Shown one piece after another: positions 1,388-8,935 of a stretch of DNA of 64,000 nucleotides (positions are counted from its first letter, which is position 1; each line of letters begins with the position of its first letter). The notes beneath the pieces are model-generated. The model ran no database searches and was not told where the DNA came from. It saw only the letters and a list, made by a program, of their open reading frames with translations. The translations under genes were made by a program, and so were the position numbers. The stretch lies in the sequence record LC819006.1, one strand, 5' to 3'.

Positions 1388-3538
1388 TCAATACGTATCG
1401 TAGATCATTCGCGTGTTTTTCTTGTTGCTCATGAAGATGCCCATGGTTTCCAAGATGTGGTAGTAAGCACCACAGCAATCTCGCACAATCTTGCGTGCGT
1501 TCGAACCAATCAGGATCTCATCCGGAATGCCAGACAGCTGGATGATACTGACAGGAACGTAAATCGTTGTCATGTACTTACGACCGATGCGAGTACATTC
1601 GTCTTGAATATCCTTCACGAGATCCTTGTTCTGAATCTGATCCAGATAGACTTGCCAATCCGACACGTTACCGATTTCCAGAGAAACCTTCAACGACGTA
1701 TAGGGCGGCTCATCGACCATGCCATAGATCTTGCCAAACGTACGGTTCCAGAAAGTATGGTTCCAGTACGGTGTGCGATCTGCATCTTTGATTTTGTACG
1801 CATCCGCCTTCTTCAGGTGAGCAGCGCGGAAGTATTCGGTATTACCCGACTTCACGTCTTCATAGATCGACCATTCTTTCTCAGCGACCATGTCGACGAT
1901 GTCGTTCAGGTTAAGACCTTTACCATCCACCACAGCTTTCATGGATTCCAGCAGGAAGTCTTTCACTTCTGTCACAATCGCGCCAGGTGTAGCCGACGAG
2001 ATCATGTTTGCTCCCTTTAGTTCCAGGTCAGGCTTACGGAATACGTTACCTTCCTGTGCTGTCTTCATGGCGTAGTAATGCTTGGCCATCGAAGTCGGGC
2101 AGAAGATCTTGAACTTGTACTCGTTCTTCATCTGCACGTCGAACAGACGATCCGGATGGACGCCATAGTTCGCAGACATCATTGCATGCAGGTGAGATGA
2201 CGTTTGTGCGGCGAGATACACCACGACGTCAGAAGTCGATTCCATTTCGTCCGTGAAACCGATTGTGCCGTAAACACGACCAACCCATTCCTGAACGGTA
2301 AACAGAGTCGAGTCAGTATCGCCACCGAGAACGGAACGACGAAGACTGGTCGGGAAGTTGCCCGTGGATGCAGGCATGTTGCCCGTGAGCCAGAAAGCAT
2401 CGATCAACGGCTGCACTGAGCACAGCGTATTGTTGATGTTCTTGGCATTGGTTGCGAGTACGCCGTAGTTGTGCGGACTTTCTTTCAGAATTTCCTTCGG
2501 CTTTTTACCAACCGAGAAAGAACGACAGATCTGACGCGACAGGTTAACGGTATCTTCCGAAACTGTCTTGAGAACGAACTGAGCTTCATCTACCGGCATC
2601 GATTCGTCGATGAAACGCGACAACTGATTCAGCAGACCAACCACAAAACCAGTATTGTGCTTGTACAGATGGTAGAAATCACCAACATACACGAATGCCG
2701 CACGCTCAAGCGGCTTCATCGTTTCGACGAAATCCCACACAGGTTGCATGTGCTGGTTCGACTGGAAATAGAGCAGACGACTACGATCGATACAATCGTT
2801 GACATCCTGCACCGTCGGCCAATGCAACTGGAACATCTTCATTGCTTCCTCGACCTTCTCCAGATCGGTGATAGCACAGATCGACACGAGGTTGTTCAGG
2901 ATCGTGTCGCGGTCCATGTAGTGGCGGTTGCCTTCGATGAACTTTTCGTTGTTTGCGTTTCCGTATGCAGTCGTGTTACGGCAGTTTGTCGTAAGCGACG
3001 AATGCGAAGTCGGATTAAATAGAGCCGTCGACGGAGTGAGTGAGGCCCCGGAGAGCGAGTTATTCGTGGTCTTTGCATTGTTCTGTCCGAGATCCTTAAA
3101 CACATAGAGAACCATGTCCCCTGCATTCTTGGCATCGAACATCTGATCTTTGAGCACCGAACGCTTAACGATGTTATCCATCGTGTAAAGCGACAGGAGC
3201 GATTGCCGAACATCCGGCGAGCAATACGACGTAAATGTCGGCGACATCGATTCGTTATTCTCGAATACATCTGCGAGATAACGCGACATCGTGGTTTCTT
3301 TGAGAACGCGGTCTTCAAAATTCTCACGATGGAGATAACGCACCATCGGATCCCGGAATTCAAACAGACCACCGGGTTTCATGTTCTTGACGACGAATTC
3401 TCGTGCAGCTTGGATCGTGATTCCCTTTCTCTTGGAGAGAAAGAGCGATGCCTGGTCTACATAACCGTTGAGCACTTTCGTGTCACGGCGATAGTCCTCT
3501 CGTTCTTTACGGAAAGTTACAGGTCGCAACTGATGCAT
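1388..3538 (-). CDS. Family-B DNA polymerase, palm-containing subunit of the split phiKZ-type polymerase (gp50-like)
   Basis: Catalytic GDTDS motif, K..NNSLSG region, HSSLTTNCRNTTAYGNANNE, KHYYA and LELKG. Start set at MHQLRP (ATG 3538) after an AAGGA RBS. Confidence 0.88.
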   Translation of the reverse strand: MHQLRPVTFRKEREDYRRDTKVLNGYVDQASLFLSKRKGITIQAAREFVVKNMKPGGLFEFRDPMVRYLHRENFEDRVLKETTMSRYLADVFENNESMSPTFTSYCSPDVRQSLLSLYTMDNIVKRSVLKDQMFDAKNAGDMVLYVFKDLGQNNAKTTNNSLSGASLTPSTALFNPTSHSSLTTNCRNTTAYGNANNEKFIEGNRHYMDRDTILNNLVSICAITDLEKVEEAMKMFQLHWPTVQDVNDCIDRSRLLYFQSNQHMQPVWDFVETMKPLERAAFVYVGDFYHLYKHNTGFVVGLLNQLSRFIDESMPVDEAQFVLKTVSEDTVNLSRQICRSFSVGKKPKEILKESPHNYGVLATNAKNINNTLCSVQPLIDAFWLTGNMPASTGNFPTSLRRSVLGGDTDSTLFTVQEWVGRVYGTIGFTDEMESTSDVVVYLAAQTSSHLHAMMSANYGVHPDRLFDVQMKNEYKFKIFCPTSMAKHYYAMKTAQEGNVFRKPDLELKGANMISSATPGAIVTEVKDFLLESMKAVVDGKGLNLNDIVDMVAEKEWSIYEDVKSGNTEYFRAAHLKKADAYKIKDADRTPYWNHTFWNRTFGKIYGMVDEPPYTSLKVSLEIGNVSDWQVYLDQIQNKDLVKDIQDECTRIGRKYMTTIYVPVSIIQLSGIPDEILIGSNARKIVRDCCGAYYHILETMGIFMSNKKNTRMIYDTY

Positions 3539-3577
3539 TGTTTCCGTTCCTTGGGTTGACAGCAAAAAAAGATAACA

Positions 3578-3648: not shown

Positions 3649-4074
3649 TCAGGTCGTGGTCGTATTGCCATTGAAGGTGATCTGGAAGTTGACGAAGCCG
3701 GCTTGCTTGAGCATCGTCGACAGGCGTACCAGATCCGACGTCGAGACGTTCGGAATGACGATACCGGCAACGCTGACCTGAACTTCCGAGATGGAAGTCG
3801 GGTCAATCCAGGGCTCACCGATGATGGTGATCGTGCCATCGATTTTCTTGATCCGGTAGTAGTTATACTGACGCGGATCGTTGGGGAAACCCGTCGGCAA
3901 GTTCCCGGACGAGACAACAGCTGCATGCACGGGCTGAATGTCGCCTTGGAGCATGACTGCAGTTTCGAACGGGAAGTAGCCGAGGATCTCGACACGTTTG
4001 AAAGAAGTACCCAGGACATTCGGAGCATACGTCTCGAAGTCATAGATCTTCTTATTGTCCATCGCTTGTGACAT
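3649..4074 (-). CDS. Conserved jumbo-phage hypothetical protein upstream of DNA polymerase (phiKZ gp49-like position)
   Basis: Clean ORF with phage codon usage; FETYAPNVLG and YYRIKKIDGTITIIGEPWID resemble the syntenic phiKZ-like protein. Confidence 0.65.
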   Translation of the reverse strand: MSQAMDNKKIYDFETYAPNVLGTSFKRVEILGYFPFETAVMLQGDIQPVHAAVVSSGNLPTGFPNDPRQYNYYRIKKIDGTITIIGEPWIDPTSISEVQVSVAGIVIPNVSTSDLVRLSTMLKQAGFVNFQITFNGNTTTT

Positions 4075-4086
4075 GGATGTTCACCT

Positions 4087-4467
4087 TTAATCGTCGAACG
4101 GAGTTTCGAATCTTTTCACCACAATAGAGCGGTTATTCCGGTTCGACTCAGGTGCGTACTCGAATCCATCGCCAGCGTACAGACCGTGCGCCCGTAATTG
4201 CGACGCAATGTTTTTTACGAGAAGAAAAAAAGATTCCAGGAACCGCTGGAGGAATCTTGGATCGGGCTCCAGATGTTCACGATAGAAATTCCCCAACTTG
4301 GACAGTTGAGGTTCCTCGTGAACATCTTCGAGCTCGAAGATGATGACGTCGAACACCATCAGGACGACGTCACTCAAAACGTATTCAGGTAGTTTCTTCT
4401 CCGGACCCACATCGCGACAGAATTCACGAAGCGCGTGTCGGAGGTCGACAATTATCCGCTCAGACAT
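4087..4467 (-). CDS. Hypothetical protein, paralog-array member A
   Basis: 126 aa, overlaps the upstream gene; N-terminal RIIVDLRH. Confidence 0.7.
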   Translation of the reverse strand: MSERIIVDLRHALREFCRDVGPEKKLPEYVLSDVVLMVFDVIIFELEDVHEEPQLSKLGNFYREHLEPDPRFLQRFLESFFLLVKNIASQLRAHGLYAGDGFEYAPESNRNNRSIVVKRFETPFDD

Positions 4468-4880
4468 TCCCCTTCACCATGTTGGTCGATTTCATGTTCA
4501 GAAAAGATCTTGATGATCATATCCATACCCACAAACCCTTCAAATTTCAAAATGCTTGGAACTTGTGAGTTCAGAAGTTCAAGCTCTTTCATGTAACTAA
4601 AAAGTGTCGTCACGAATTCGTACGCCATCTGGGCAACGTCATCCGTGTACAACTCTTCGAGGATCCCCGTATCCGTGAGTTCCACGGCCATCTTCATCGT
4701 AGCTTCCAGGAGCTCGATATGTTGATTGGTCTTAGCGTTCTGAGAATGATGCAACCACATCACCATCGTGATCAGCATCTGCATCAGAACAAACTGATGT
4801 TCATCCTCTCGGAAATATTCCTCGAAGACGCTCTTCCATTTCTGGATCCGATCTTTCGTCGGAATAATGAATTTTTGCAT
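4452..4880 (-). CDS. Hypothetical protein, paralog-array member B
   Basis: 142 aa, ATG start; N-terminal KFIIPTKD and C-terminal MDMIIKI strand. Confidence 0.7.
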   Translation of the reverse strand: MQKFIIPTKDRIQKWKSVFEEYFREDEHQFVLMQMLITMVMWLHHSQNAKTNQHIELLEATMKMAVELTDTGILEELYTDDVAQMAYEFVTTLFSYMKELELLNSQVPSILKFEGFVGMDMIIKIFSEHEIDQHGEGECLSG

Positions 4881-4935
4881 GTTAACGATTCGCCGATAGG
4901 TGTCTCATAACCATTGCCGAACGATCGATGTATTT

Positions 4936-5292
4936 TTATTCGATCACCTCAAACTTCAACGACATAAAACTGTCGCTGGGAATGAAGCTAACGTGCTGAT
5001 GAATGAACCCTGCACGCTGCAACTCGCGGAGAATGTGCGCACGGATCCTCATAAAGAAATCCATGATTCGCATCTGCTGCCCAACAGTAAATGGCTTGAC
5101 TTCCTGATGACCCTGAAACCAGTAGTCACCATAAACCATTCTCCTGATGTACGCGCGATCTTCTTTATCTCCACGTATACCTTCACACAGGTTGTCTAGG
5201 GTCTCGGAATAATCGATTAATCCAAACTCCAGTGTAAAGAATTCCCGGAACATTTTCAGAATTTGGATCTTATCGATCAAGACCAGTTTCAT
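4936..5292 (-). CDS. Hypothetical protein, paralog-array member C
   Basis: Start MKLVLID overlaps the upstream stop as TGATG, indicating translational coupling. Confidence 0.7.
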   Translation of the reverse strand: MKLVLIDKIQILKMFREFFTLEFGLIDYSETLDNLCEGIRGDKEDRAYIRRMVYGDYWFQGHQEVKPFTVGQQMRIMDFFMRIRAHILRELQRAGFIHQHVSFIPSDSFMSLKFEVIE

Positions 5293-5717
5293 CAGAACCT
5301 CAATCGCATTTTCAAAGCGTGAGCGCTGGACCACTGAAGGCTGCGTTCATCGATGGCATAATCGCCGTGTACATCGCGAATTAACGACATCGTAGCGCGA
5401 ACCATATCGTCTATGATTGCACCGACTTTTGTTGCTTCACGAATCTCGTACTCTTCAACCGAGTAATTCCGATTGAAGGTGGCGTTGGAGAAATAGGTTG
5501 CTTCTTCTTCCTTTTTCGTCCACTCAGCCATCGCATCGTTCATCTCCCGAAAGATCTGAACGTCACGTGCACTTATATCTACTTCTCGCTGGGTCGCCAT
5601 CACACACGACTCGATAAAACCCTCCAGTTCATGCGGATAGAAATACAACAGATCCTCGGCAGGACCCACCTTTTCGAATACGTGACGGAAATCCACCAGG
5701 TAGGTTCGCTCACCCAT
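5292..5717 (-). CDS. Hypothetical protein, paralog-array member D
   Basis: AAGGAGG RBS precedes MGERTYLVDFRH (ATG 5717); the open frame extends to 5879. Confidence 0.65.
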   Translation of the reverse strand: MGERTYLVDFRHVFEKVGPAEDLLYFYPHELEGFIESCVMATQREVDISARDVQIFREMNDAMAEWTKKEEEATYFSNATFNRNYSVEEYEIREATKVGAIIDDMVRATMSLIRDVHGDYAIDERSLQWSSAHALKMRLRF

Positions 5718-5835
5718 GTAACGATCCTCCTTTAGCACTTCAATCATCCTCGGGTATTGCGTTGTGAAAAGATTCCGATTACGGAACGACTCATCTCTCA
5801 AAGCCAGCCCCGGTTTCGTTTCCACCTGGATCAGC

Positions 5836-6261
5836 CTAGAAGAAGTAGCCTCGTTGTTCTTCGTAACGTTCTGGAACATTGATAATCAGCTCCAATCTTT
5901 CGGTCAGCCAGTACATGTCCTCAGGTAGCTCGGCAGCGATATTCGGAAACCACGCCAAGACTTCACCCAGTACCAGATGTTCGAGTTCTTGTTTTACAAA
6001 GTCCGCCTCACCATTGATCATGCAATCGAGGTTCAGCGCCAGATCGAGTTCTTCCTGCATCTCGGTATGATCCGAAGTCAGATCAAAAACCTTCTCCACG
6101 ATCAAAGGAAGAATCTCCTTGATGTGGCAGGTCGAATACGTTTTGCCTTTTTCTGTAGCCCTTCTGACGTACCAGTTAATGGGACGATGCAGATCGACTA
6201 GATATCTACCACCTTTGTACGGTGGCTTTGGATAGACGGGATCATCGTCAAATGGTCTCAT
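5836..6261 (-). CDS. Hypothetical protein, paralog-array member E
   Basis: Likely start MRPFDDD overlapping the upstream stop; contains GRYLVDLHR. Confidence 0.65.
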   Translation of the reverse strand: MRPFDDDPVYPKPPYKGGRYLVDLHRPINWYVRRATEKGKTYSTCHIKEILPLIVEKVFDLTSDHTEMQEELDLALNLDCMINGEADFVKQELEHLVLGEVLAWFPNIAAELPEDMYWLTERLELIINVPERYEEQRGYFF

Positions 6262-6823
6262 GCCGGTTAGCAATCTTTTCTTGTTCCGCTTTCGTCCACT
6301 GGATGACTCGCCAGTCTGCATACTCTTCGATCATCAGAGTGCGCAGATCACGACCTTGTGTGAGGCGATGCAAGACGAAACGGTTCGGATTCATGTGCTC
6401 GGTCGTCAGAGCCAGCAATTGCTTGAGGACATCATCCAGCATGTCCGCAGCTTTCTTGTTTGCCGGATCGTTCAGATCGTAACGCAATTCTTCACGCAGT
6501 TCTGCTTCGATGTCGAAACCGATCAGCTCACGAAGATTTATGAGGTGGATATGCCAGTCACAGTCTTCGCCATAAACCCAGGCGCGCCGACGATTGACGA
6601 TAGCTTCCATGATCGTGATAACGACCTTGCGAACGAGATGCGTGAGAGCCGGTTTTGTAAAGTCGTATTCCTGGATGCTCGGCAGCATCTCGAAGATGTT
6701 CATGATGGCAGCAATGTGCTGCTGCGGATCGATAATGGTAATCTTGAACGGACGATCGGAGATAACCGAAGTATCCATCCAGACTACACCATCCGATGCT
6801 TTTGTGAATTCGGGTTCTTTCAC
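6248..6823 (-). CDS. Hypothetical protein, paralog-array member F
   Basis: GTG start after AAGGA/GGAG; contains KITIIDPQQH. Confidence 0.7.
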   Translation of the reverse strand: MKEPEFTKASDGVVWMDTSVISDRPFKITIIDPQQHIAAIMNIFEMLPSIQEYDFTKPALTHLVRKVVITIMEAIVNRRRAWVYGEDCDWHIHLINLRELIGFDIEAELREELRYDLNDPANKKAADMLDDVLKQLLALTTEHMNPNRFVLHRLTQGRDLRTLMIEEYADWRVIQWTKAEQEKIANRHETI

Positions 6824-7017: not shown

Positions 7018-8013
7018 TTAGAACACCAGGCCGTTGCTGGCCTTCTTGGTATTGCCTTCCGACAGCTTGTTGCGAACGACACGCGCGCCTTCACGCGTTT
7101 CGTAATCCGCCAACTGCTTGCGCAGGTTCTTCATGACGCCGTCGAGGAAACCATCAGCCACCACGAAGTGCAGCGGGAACTTCATGTCCTTGTCTGCATC
7201 CGGATGGACCGGAACGCCGACGCGCTGGAACTCGACCGGACGATCGAGCTTCGTGTTGTTCAGGTCGTTGTTCAGCGTTGCCACCGTCATCAGGTTGGCG
7301 TCCGAACCGAGGTTCAGCTTTTCCCGATGGATCGACAGCACACCGACCTGCGGCGCAAACGACGTGACGTTTTCCGGATGGAAAACGTTGATCAGGTCGC
7401 GAGCATCCAGGTTCTTGTTCTGGCCGCTGAACAGAACGGTCAAACACGATACTGCCAGATGCACCTTCGCGTCGACTTCTTCGATCGTGCCGTCGATGCC
7501 GTTTTGCAGATACTGCAACACGATCGACTTCTCGCGCGTTTCGACGATCCCTTCGTAGGACTCCATCGTACCGATGGTGTTCAGGATGTAGTTCTTGGTG
7601 TCGTCACCGCCGATCGAGAACACGATTGCAGTCTTGCCCTGAGCGAGTGCTTCCGATGCGATCGACGGACCCATCACCGAACCAGAACCACCGGTCGTGG
7701 AATGGATGATGATGTTGACGTCGGCCAGCGGGAATTTCTGGAGCATTTCGCCGGTGTACTTGATGATGTCCGGGCCATTGTAGCGGCGAACACCGCCCGA
7801 GCCGTTTGCTTCCGGCAGCTGATAGAAGTGCTCCGACGGCACACCGAAGGTAGATGCTTTGGAGGTGTCCATGTACACCGGATCGAGTTCTGCATAGCCG
7901 GTATTGCGATTGCCGCGTTCCGGTTCGAAATACTTGCCGATTCCGATGCCTGCGCCGCCGCAAGCGTAAATGCGAAGTTTGCCCAGCGTGTTGGTATTGT
8001 TCAGTTCCGACAT
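7018..8013 (-). CDS. phuZ: PhuZ phage tubulin
   Basis: YACGGAGIGIG, MDTS, GSGGVRR and the tubulin signature STTGGSGSVMGP; C-terminal tail ending ASNGLVF; 331 aa. Confidence 0.93.
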   Translation of the reverse strand: MSELNNTNTLGKLRIYACGGAGIGIGKYFEPERGNRNTGYAELDPVYMDTSKASTFGVPSEHFYQLPEANGSGGVRRYNGPDIIKYTGEMLQKFPLADVNIIIHSTTGGSGSVMGPSIASEALAQGKTAIVFSIGGDDTKNYILNTIGTMESYEGIVETREKSIVLQYLQNGIDGTIEEVDAKVHLAVSCLTVLFSGQNKNLDARDLINVFHPENVTSFAPQVGVLSIHREKLNLGSDANLMTVATLNNDLNNTKLDRPVEFQRVGVPVHPDADKDMKFPLHFVVADGFLDGVMKNLRKQLADYETREGARVVRNKLSEGNTKKASNGLVF

Positions 8014-8122: not shown

Positions 8123-8935
8123 ATGCATTCAGGATCGGCCGTTGAGAAGGCCATCACGGAGATCAAGTACATCATCCCTGAGGAGATTCTTGATCTCGTC
8201 TTTCTCAAGAAAGCTTACTTCTTTCGTGACAGGCCGACCAACCTGGATCGAGAAATAATCAAGAAGGTCATCGCACCACGCGTGATGGTCGACTGCAGTC
8301 TCATCGGAGGTACAGACTATATCGTACCCCTGATGGATATTTATCGCGAGCTTACCGAGGAGTGGATGGCTGTTTACCGCATCCCGAAAGAGTTCACCGA
8401 TAACCGCAGCGTCATGTCGATTCTCGGCGTGATGTATATCAATCCGTACATGGTATCGGCGCCCGCGGGTAACAACATTACTGGCTGGTCGCACATCATG
8501 GCGACTACTCAGGCAGTGCTGGAAGCGATGTCTCCGATTCCGAACTTCAGTTCGTCGGATGTTTCGCTTGAAGGTGAGAACGTGATTGTCATTCGTGACG
8601 CTCGAGTTCTGCCCTCCTTCAGTTATGCTCGTGTCATTCTGTCTTACGACGAGTACATGAGCAACATCAATCCGCGTTCGTATCTCGCGTTTGCCAAGAT
8701 GTGTGAACTCGCAGTCAAGTCATACATCTGGAAGAACCGCGTGATTCCTCTGGATCGTGGTGAACTGACTGCTGGCGTGACACTTGGCGCCATCAAGGAA
8801 GTCATCGACGAGTACAAGGATGCGGAACAGATGTACCAGGATTATCGCAAAGATACCATGCGAAAAGTCCTGTTGATGAACGACGAAGGACGCAAACGTC
8901 GTCATCTCACGCGCATTATTGGCGGCTATAAATAA
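8123..8935 (+). CDS. Conserved phiKZ-like protein, probably virion structural
   Basis: 270 aa, TATG-overlapping start; IPEEILDLVF and LAVKSYIWKN..I.LDRG resemble a conserved jumbo-phage structural family. Confidence 0.6.
   Translation: MHSGSAVEKAITEIKYIIPEEILDLVFLKKAYFFRDRPTNLDREIIKKVIAPRVMVDCSLIGGTDYIVPLMDIYRELTEEWMAVYRIPKEFTDNRSVMSILGVMYINPYMVSAPAGNNITGWSHIMATTQAVLEAMSPIPNFSSSDVSLEGENVIVIRDARVLPSFSYARVILSYDEYMSNINPRSYLAFAKMCELAVKSYIWKNRVIPLDRGELTAGVTLGAIKEVIDEYKDAEQMYQDYRKDTMRKVLLMNDEGRKRRHLTRIIGGYK

Follow-up and report, generated by a model that had tools for sequence, protein, structure and literature searches.

Locus and Gene Bounds

The DNA stretch analyzed here, 64,000 nucleotides (nt) of sequence record LC819006.1 (hereafter, the window), comes from a chimallivirus of the genus Chiangmaivirus. 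Burkholderia phage FLC8 and Ralstonia phage FLC4-11C match it with 100% identity, and nine other Chiangmaivirus records, including those of RSL2, RSF1, FLC6, RsoM3USA, and SURPRISE13, with 81–99.7%. The subject of this study is an array of six small genes, designated A to F, located on the minus strand between the gene for PhuZ (7018–8013) and the genes for SH3DP and DNA polymerase. In the deposited annotations, all six are hypothetical in every record. The original prediction, made from the letters of the window alone, had pointed out six coupled or closely spaced genes between phuZ and the DNA polymerase gene. The array is indeed present, and its gene bounds were corrected by stop-to-stop alignments, using the loci of six phages and then nine metagenome loci, as follows:

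4087–4467, minus strand: gene A, 126 amino acids (aa); open reading frame (ORF) and annotation, bounds by ortholog alignment
4452–4880, minus strand: gene B, 142 aa; PHROG 34482
4936–5292, minus strand: gene C, 118 aa; ATG start at 5292
5292–5879, minus strand: gene D; core domain at 5292–5717 (141 aa), with the ORF open to 5879 (195-aa form)
5836–6261, minus strand: gene E, 141 aa; ATG start at 6261
6248–6823, minus strand: gene F, 191 aa; GTG start at 6823; PHROG 28182

The genes are tightly packed: A and B overlap by 16 nt and E and F by 14 nt, the ATG of C overlaps the stop codon of D by 1 nt, and the intergenic gaps are of 55 nt (B–C), 118 nt (D core–E), and 12 nt (A–SH3DP). The start of C is preceded by a GAGG sequence 9 nt upstream; a longer GTG-initiated ORF of this gene (to 5334) is not the gene according to the ortholog alignment. 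Likewise, a start that would give a 161-aa form of E was rejected, as it is missing in RSF1. A scan for sigma-70 promoters and terminators gave matches at the chance level only.

Two candidate starts were found for gene D. The ATG at 5717, which gives the 141-aa form, is preceded by the Shine-Dalgarno sequence AAGGAGG, and PHROG 38636 matches residues 55–195 of the 195-aa form. The 54 residues between the two candidate starts are poorly conserved and make up an N-terminal tail. The upstream ATG at 5879 is kept in 15 of 15 loci and is the sole start available in the distant relatives. It spans two codons of E, for N/H/D and V (xAT-GTN), and the wobble T of this motif is kept in all 15 loci, even where the E residue differs. 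The conservation of the wobble T argues for selection on the overlapping start that yields the long form of D; in the clade of the window, however, a strong internal ribosome-binding site is present at 5717 as well.

Conservation and Synteny of the Array

With tblastn, each of the six genes was detected a single time in each of 11 phage records, which are the same for all six, and more distant relatives were recovered from metagenomes by protein searches and contig look-ups. Besides the window, the array order with one ortholog of each gene was found in five phage loci and nine metagenome loci (15 loci), and each family hidden Markov model (HMM) matches exactly one ORF per locus. The gene order is the same everywhere: DUF7484 (on the opposite strand), PhuZ, F, E, D, C, B, A, SH3DP, and DNA polymerase. 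This makes the array a stable module rather than a variable or recently amplified one, and the amplification that had originally been proposed does not hold as a recent or lineage-specific event, given the stable single-copy orthologs in the same order in all of the relatives found. The genes flanking the array in the window are:

7018–8013, minus strand: PhuZ tubulin, upstream neighbour of the array; PHROG 4733 (E-value, 6.9e-108), with weak matches to Pfam Tubulin and TubZ_C_2
8123–8935, plus strand: DUF7484 protein, counterpart of PhiKZ gp42, divergently oriented, upstream synteny anchor; Pfam PF24302 (E-value, 1.4e-89)
3649–4074, minus strand: SH3DP, small SH3-fold partner of the divergent DNA polymerase; Pfam PF20287 (E-value, 1.4e-34)
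1388–3565, minus strand: divergent family B DNA polymerase (divDNApol), counterpart of PhiKZ gp50; Pfam PF20286 (E-value, 1.1e-280)

SH3DP, the counterpart of PhiKZ gp49 and core gene cg1, serves as the downstream anchor of the locus.

The six proteins differ in their rate of divergence. In the most divergent relatives sampled, A retains 61–63% identity to its window counterpart, F 41–42%, D 38–40%, E 34–35%, C 31–32%, and B 29–30%, compared to 56–58% for SH3DP and 49–50% for PhuZ. A is, therefore, the most conserved member of the array (its orthologs are 61–96% identical across 13 loci), and B is the fastest-evolving one (29–99%). B also occurs as two allele types, RSL2 and RSF1 carrying a 9-aa insertion. 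The B proteins of these two phages are 60–65% identical to that of the window vs 83–98% for the adjacent genes (in RSL2 alone, 65% for B and 91–98% for its neighbours), which points to local recombination or accelerated change. The N-terminal tail of E is rich in prolines; at the other end of the protein, a conserved VP-x-x-YE motif precedes the terminal QRG-x-FF tail, which is invariant. F bears N- and C-terminal extensions around its core, and the 22-residue C-terminal extension beyond the last strand is highly conserved. The QRG-x-FF tail of E and the C-terminal extension of F look like docking peptides.

Some variation was observed around the array as well. PhuZ of FLC4-4C is 73% identical to the window protein, the flanking genes being 99–100% identical, and across the relatives the PhuZ identities are out of step with those of the neighbouring genes. 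PhuZ is also more GC-rich (0.56–0.58) than the array (0.43–0.49). This mosaic pattern of PhuZ among near-identical phages suggests allele exchange. A scan of IMG/VR with PhuZ returned RSF1 itself only. In two metagenomic relatives (L012, 1685–2488; L014, 615–1409), genes for GIY-YIG/I-TevI-like homing endonucleases are found beside DUF7484 and PhuZ; the window is devoid of them. Downstream of the DNA polymerase gene, relatives L008, L009, and L012 carry genes with Laminin_G_3 (concanavalin-like) domains, the counterparts of which in the window are probably the ORFs at 4–624 and 627–1340.

Equivalent Locus in Other Chimalliviruses

In RP12, FLC1-1B, FLC9, Ea35-70, Noxifer, 201phi2-1, PhiPA3, and PhiKZ, five to eight small genes are located directly upstream of the SH3DP–DNA polymerase pair, and DUF7484 and PhuZ are usually close by. 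These equivalent arrays include RP12 ORF007–ORF013, FLC9 gp4–gp10, Ea35-70 gp208–gp215, Noxifer gp035–gp042, and 201phi2-1 gp74–gp80. They resemble the array of the window in locus and gene sizes, and several of their products are structural neighbours of A or D (see below). They differ from it in gene number (five to eight), are all uncharacterised, and show no sequence similarity to A–F except for a weak link between A and FLC9 gp4. The block is syntenic across distant chimalliviruses (loci L008, L011, and L014, Ea35-70 locus L021, and Noxifer locus L027), with the order DUF7484 (opposite strand), PhuZ, small-gene array, SH3DP, DNA polymerase, one opposite-strand gene, and chimallin; with it, the published core block 1, which begins with cg1 (SH3DP), is extended in the upstream direction.

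In PhiKZ, gp042 is the DUF7484 protein (Pfam PF24302; E-value, 1.5e-98) and gp049 is SH3DP. Since the PhiKZ anchors gp42 and gp49/gp50 match both sides of the locus, the array of the window is the positional counterpart of PhiKZ orf43/44–orf48. Two of these genes have been characterised by genetic selection: the nuclear protein Nlp1 depends for its import on PhiKZ orf47 (Imp2) and on PhiPA3 orf44, Imp2 itself being imported through Imp1, and host TopA depends in this way on PhiKZ orf48 (Imp4) (Kokontis et al., bioRxiv 10.1101/2024.03.27.586873). Based on sequence, Imp2 and Imp4 were reported to be conserved in Pseudomonas phages only (bioRxiv 10.1101/2024.03.27.586873). In a later preprint, they are termed cargo-specific adaptors.

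When 1.84 billion representative proteins were searched with the A-family profile, only A orthologs were retrieved, including remote homologs of about 25–35% identity. All three of the remote homologs that were located lie directly upstream of SH3DP, i.e., in the position of Imp4. The expanded A HMM has no match in the PhiKZ locus.

Protein Families and Sequence Motifs

Searches of Pfam, PHROGs, NCBIfam, and PADLOC yielded no informative family for A–F, so the initial remark that no named family could be recognised holds for these sequence libraries. In PHROGs, B, D, and F fall into three separate families. Family libraries and PDB profile searches gave no match of A–F to nucleic-acid-binding or enzymatic families, and the PDB sequence-profile searches ended either without a match or with noise, such as C5a at an E-value of 0.05.

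Two motifs had been put forward as shared features of the array. An Asp after the first strand was said to occur in five of the six proteins, and among the orthologs it is invariant only in A and F; the residue varies in those of C (D/N), D (D/G/N), and E (D/S/G/P/M). The strand-plus-Asp combination is found in 5/6 array proteins vs 6/38 other proteins of FLC6 (P = 0.002, a post hoc value from the same data); among the array proteins of other chimalliviruses, only 13 of 39 have it. A catalytic role for this Asp was ruled out in view of its variation in the orthologs of C, D, and E. The pattern F-F-x5-I-x3-L-x3-G, thought to be common to A and C, fits A only: C has x6, and the distant orthologs of C lose F-F.

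Predicted Structures and Fold Neighbours

AlphaFold2 models were built for A and the core of D, which had been picked for the most suggestive N-terminal likeness. The model of A (predicted local distance difference test (pLDDT), 74; predicted template modelling score (pTM), 0.70) consists of strand (E) and helix (H) elements E4–8, H10–20, H28–47, H55–65, H70–93, E102–106, and E114–119, and that of the D core (pLDDT, 87.7; pTM, 0.81) of E3–9, H11–24, H30–43, H48–76, H85–117, E121–129, and E134–140. Both proteins are thus predicted to have an identical order of seven elements, namely, one strand, four helices, and two strands. The early strand and terminal beta pair that had been read from the sequences of all six proteins are borne out for A and D, the two covered by models, where the strings originally quoted fall on the first and last strands. 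A Chou-Fasman style secondary-structure estimate conflicted with AlphaFold2 on the C-terminal strands of D and was not used as evidence.

In Foldseek searches of BFVD, A matched its own FLC6 ortholog and then dozens of small uncharacterised proteins (E-values, 3e-3 to 0.1; probability, 0.9–1.0; template modelling score (TM), 0.5–0.62). The picture was similar for D, with a top TM of 0.66. Nearly all of the named organisms among these neighbours are chimallin-encoding phages according to the published list. By contrast with BFVD, a Foldseek search of PDB (350,542 chains) with D found nothing (best E-value, 1.4, with TM of 0.23; TM ≤ 0.26 throughout).

Several of the structural links lie within the array. 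A was linked to the FLC6 ortholog of F (191 aa; probability, 0.99; TM, 0.52) and to its RSL2 ortholog (177 aa; probability, 0.99; TM, 0.51), D to the RSL2 ortholog of F (probability, 0.98; TM, 0.47), and A to D (probability, 0.72; TM, 0.43). In addition, D matched a 142-aa FLC6 protein (probability, 0.57; TM, 0.42), which is probably B, the assignment being made by matching length only. The original proposal of one fold amplified and diversified is, therefore, supported at the level of the fold for A, D, and F, with weak support for B (Foldseek TM, 0.42–0.52), and gains no support from sequence or profile tests of paralogy.

Other links connect the array to the equivalent loci. A matched PhiPA3 protein 044 (probability, 0.98; TM, 0.53), a 276-aa protein of 201phi2-1 (gp79 by length; probability, 0.96; TM, 0.56), and a 287-aa protein of Phabio (probability, 0.93). 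As tblastn showed, 201phi2-1 gp79, PhiPA3 044, the Phabio protein, and PHIKZ047 are homologs, i.e., members of the Imp2 family. Overall, the matches of A to these three Imp2-family models (probability, 0.93–0.98; TM, 0.52–0.56; E-values, 0.02–0.08) are borderline and concern predicted models; D matched two of them with a probability of 0.5. A also matched RP12 ORF008 with a probability of 0.99. By length and organism, the neighbours of A and D correspond to RP12 ORF008 and ORF010, Noxifer gp038, gp040, and gp041, and Ea35-70 gp212.

Possible Role of the Array

Tentatively, A–F may be seen as one ancient, chimallivirus-specific family of alpha/beta fold, which would include PhiKZ Imp2 (and, by position, Imp4) from the same locus and the members of which would, by analogy, most likely serve as adaptors or licensing factors for particular cargoes. 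The adaptor function is suggested by position and fold, and a common ancestry of all six proteins is inferred. The family would share a common scaffold, in which four helices stand between an N-terminal strand and a C-terminal hairpin, and would have remained at the conserved locus between DUF7484/PhuZ and SH3DP–DNA polymerase, its members diverging past sequence recognition, with each retained as a single-copy ortholog. Each member would bind a different client and present it at the nuclear shell to Imp1/PicA, the conserved importer, docking on a distinct interface of the latter. The conserved tails, namely, QRG-x-FF of E, the C-terminal extension of F, and the acidic end of B, are possible docking elements, and the fast-evolving B, C, and E would follow changing clients. 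Adaptors for cargo selection at the phage nucleus were one of the two functions suggested in the original prediction, and this suggestion fits the published role of the positional counterparts orf47/Imp2 and orf48/Imp4. A wider proposal, which is conceivable but doubtful, is that the stretch from DUF7484/PhuZ to SH3DP–DNA polymerase encodes, in every chimallivirus, one ancient and rapidly diversifying superfamily with a fold absent from PDB. Imp2 and Imp4 would be its Pseudomonas-phage members, and five to eight adaptors per genus would define the nuclear-entry licence of phage and host proteins.

A number of results weigh against the adaptor-family reading. Pairwise blastp and phmmer comparisons of A–F returned noise only (an N-terminal match of 27 aa between A and D had an E-value of 0.5). 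HHalign of A–F, with shallow and then deeper (13–15-sequence) ortholog profiles, gave probabilities of ≤2.2%, and HMM cross-searches between the six families, as well as against the arrays of RP12, FLC1-1B, and FLC9, gave nothing above 9 bits. HHalign was also run all against all on 36 array profiles, drawn from eight phages; the top pair (A vs FLC9 gp4, probability of 28%) is not significant over 630 comparisons. The original prediction had regarded the lack of mutual similarity in profile searches, together with unrelated predicted structures, as evidence against itself; as none of the sequence or profile tests supports paralogy, the profile part of this check went against it. Comparisons with the Imp proteins were similar: phmmer and HHalign of A–F vs the Imp2 group gave noise (at best, protein E vs gp47 with an E-value of 0.046, in a 45-sequence set), and A vs the Imp4 group (gp48, 201phi2-1 gp80, and PhiPA3 gp45) was not among the best 40 of the 630 comparisons, the lowest of which had an HHalign probability of 1.4%, so that its own is below about 1.4%. 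On the structural side, models cover A and the D core out of six members, the confidence of the A model is moderate, and several BFVD accessions were tied to genes by length only. The structural links themselves are borderline (TM, 0.43–0.66, with 0.43 for A–D; E-values, 3e-3 to 0.6), small helix-rich folds can converge, and the shared fold of the array is, thus, only moderately supported. Finally, the tight coupling of A to SH3DP–DNA polymerase could equally reflect a role in replication.

With regard to ancestry, the main alternative is that A–F are unrelated small neighbours, in which the order of strand, helices, and hairpin is a generic, convergent solution for small alpha/beta proteins. 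The negative outcome of every sequence and profile test is what such an origin would give, as are the separation of B, D, and F in PHROGs, the low TM between A and D, and the lack of conservation of the Asp and F-F motifs. Nevertheless, this explanation is considered rather unlikely. A and D have the same seven elements in the same order, and their neighbours among viral proteins are almost exclusively chimalliviral, many of them from the same locus. A generic fold would be expected to match everywhere, and PDB contains no neighbour above the TM of 0.26. It is hard to see why a generic fold should have its neighbours in a single virus family and mostly at a single locus.

With regard to function, the main alternative is that A–F, and A above all, are replication accessory proteins (e.g., polymerase subunits or processivity/assembly factors) that act inside the nucleus alongside SH3DP and the divergent DNA polymerase, the likeness to Imp2 reflecting shared fold ancestry only. 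It would account for A being better conserved than SH3DP and PhuZ, for its distance of 12 nt from SH3DP, and for the location of its remote homologs, always immediately upstream of SH3DP–DNA polymerase; SH3DP itself has been proposed in the literature as a possible polymerase subunit. However, such a role appears unlikely for the array, as its products lack matches to nucleic-acid-binding or enzymatic families, B, C, and E evolve far faster than replication proteins, and the sole functional data for this position (PhiKZ orf47 and orf48) concern import. It is improbable that A–F represent a panel of anti-defence or host-takeover proteins, each with a different host target, as had been suggested alongside the adaptor role; no specific support for it was found. 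The proteins are small, lineage-restricted, and have no assigned function, and B is hypervariable and mosaic between near-identical phages, as might be expected of such a panel. On the other hand, gene order and copy number are stable in all of the relatives, with none of the presence/absence variation usual for counter-defence loci, A, D, and F are under strong conservation, and the array lies within the core replication/nucleus block. PADLOC-DB, which comprises defence-system proteins only, contains no match to A–F, a result that has no bearing on an anti-defence role.

Comparison with PhiKZ Imp2 and Imp4

The importer Imp1 (gp69) is core gene cg12 of the chimallin-encoding phage set that includes FLC6, RSL2, and RSF1. 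The known cargo-specific factors Imp2, Imp4, Imp5, and Imp7 have been reported as conserved only in PhiKZ-like Pseudomonas phages. According to the published core-gene table, all four are outside the sequence-defined core genome, the core block of which starts at gp049, with orf47 and orf48 just outside. If A–F do share both the fold family and the locus of Imp2, adaptors would be a general trait of the virus family, one that evolves quickly and escapes sequence searches. This would also explain why the locus is syntenic yet unrecognisable by sequence, and would provide, in every chimallivirus, a small, defined set of candidates for structural and localisation studies. Under the wider superfamily proposal, cargo adaptors would be universal and not Pseudomonas-specific, as sequence searches had reported.

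The Imp4 family is very narrow by sequence, since a word-index search with PhiKZ gp48 found close relatives only, and no Imp4 model was recognised among the Foldseek matches listed. The papers on proximity labelling and antisense oligomers make no mention of PhiPA3 gp40–gp46 or PhiKZ gp45–gp48.

Like A–F, Imp2 (PhiKZ gp47; PhiPA3 orf44; 201phi2-1 gp79) is a small protein without a Pfam family, encoded in an array between DUF7484 (gp42) and SH3DP–DNA polymerase (gp49–gp50). The proteins of the Imp2 family (170–287 aa) are larger than most of the array members of the window. The counterpart of A in PhiKZ by position is Imp4 (gp48): both are encoded directly upstream of SH3DP, they are almost equal in length (127 aa for Imp4 vs 126 aa for A), and both have, as read by eye, a short hydrophobic stretch at the start and two at the end.

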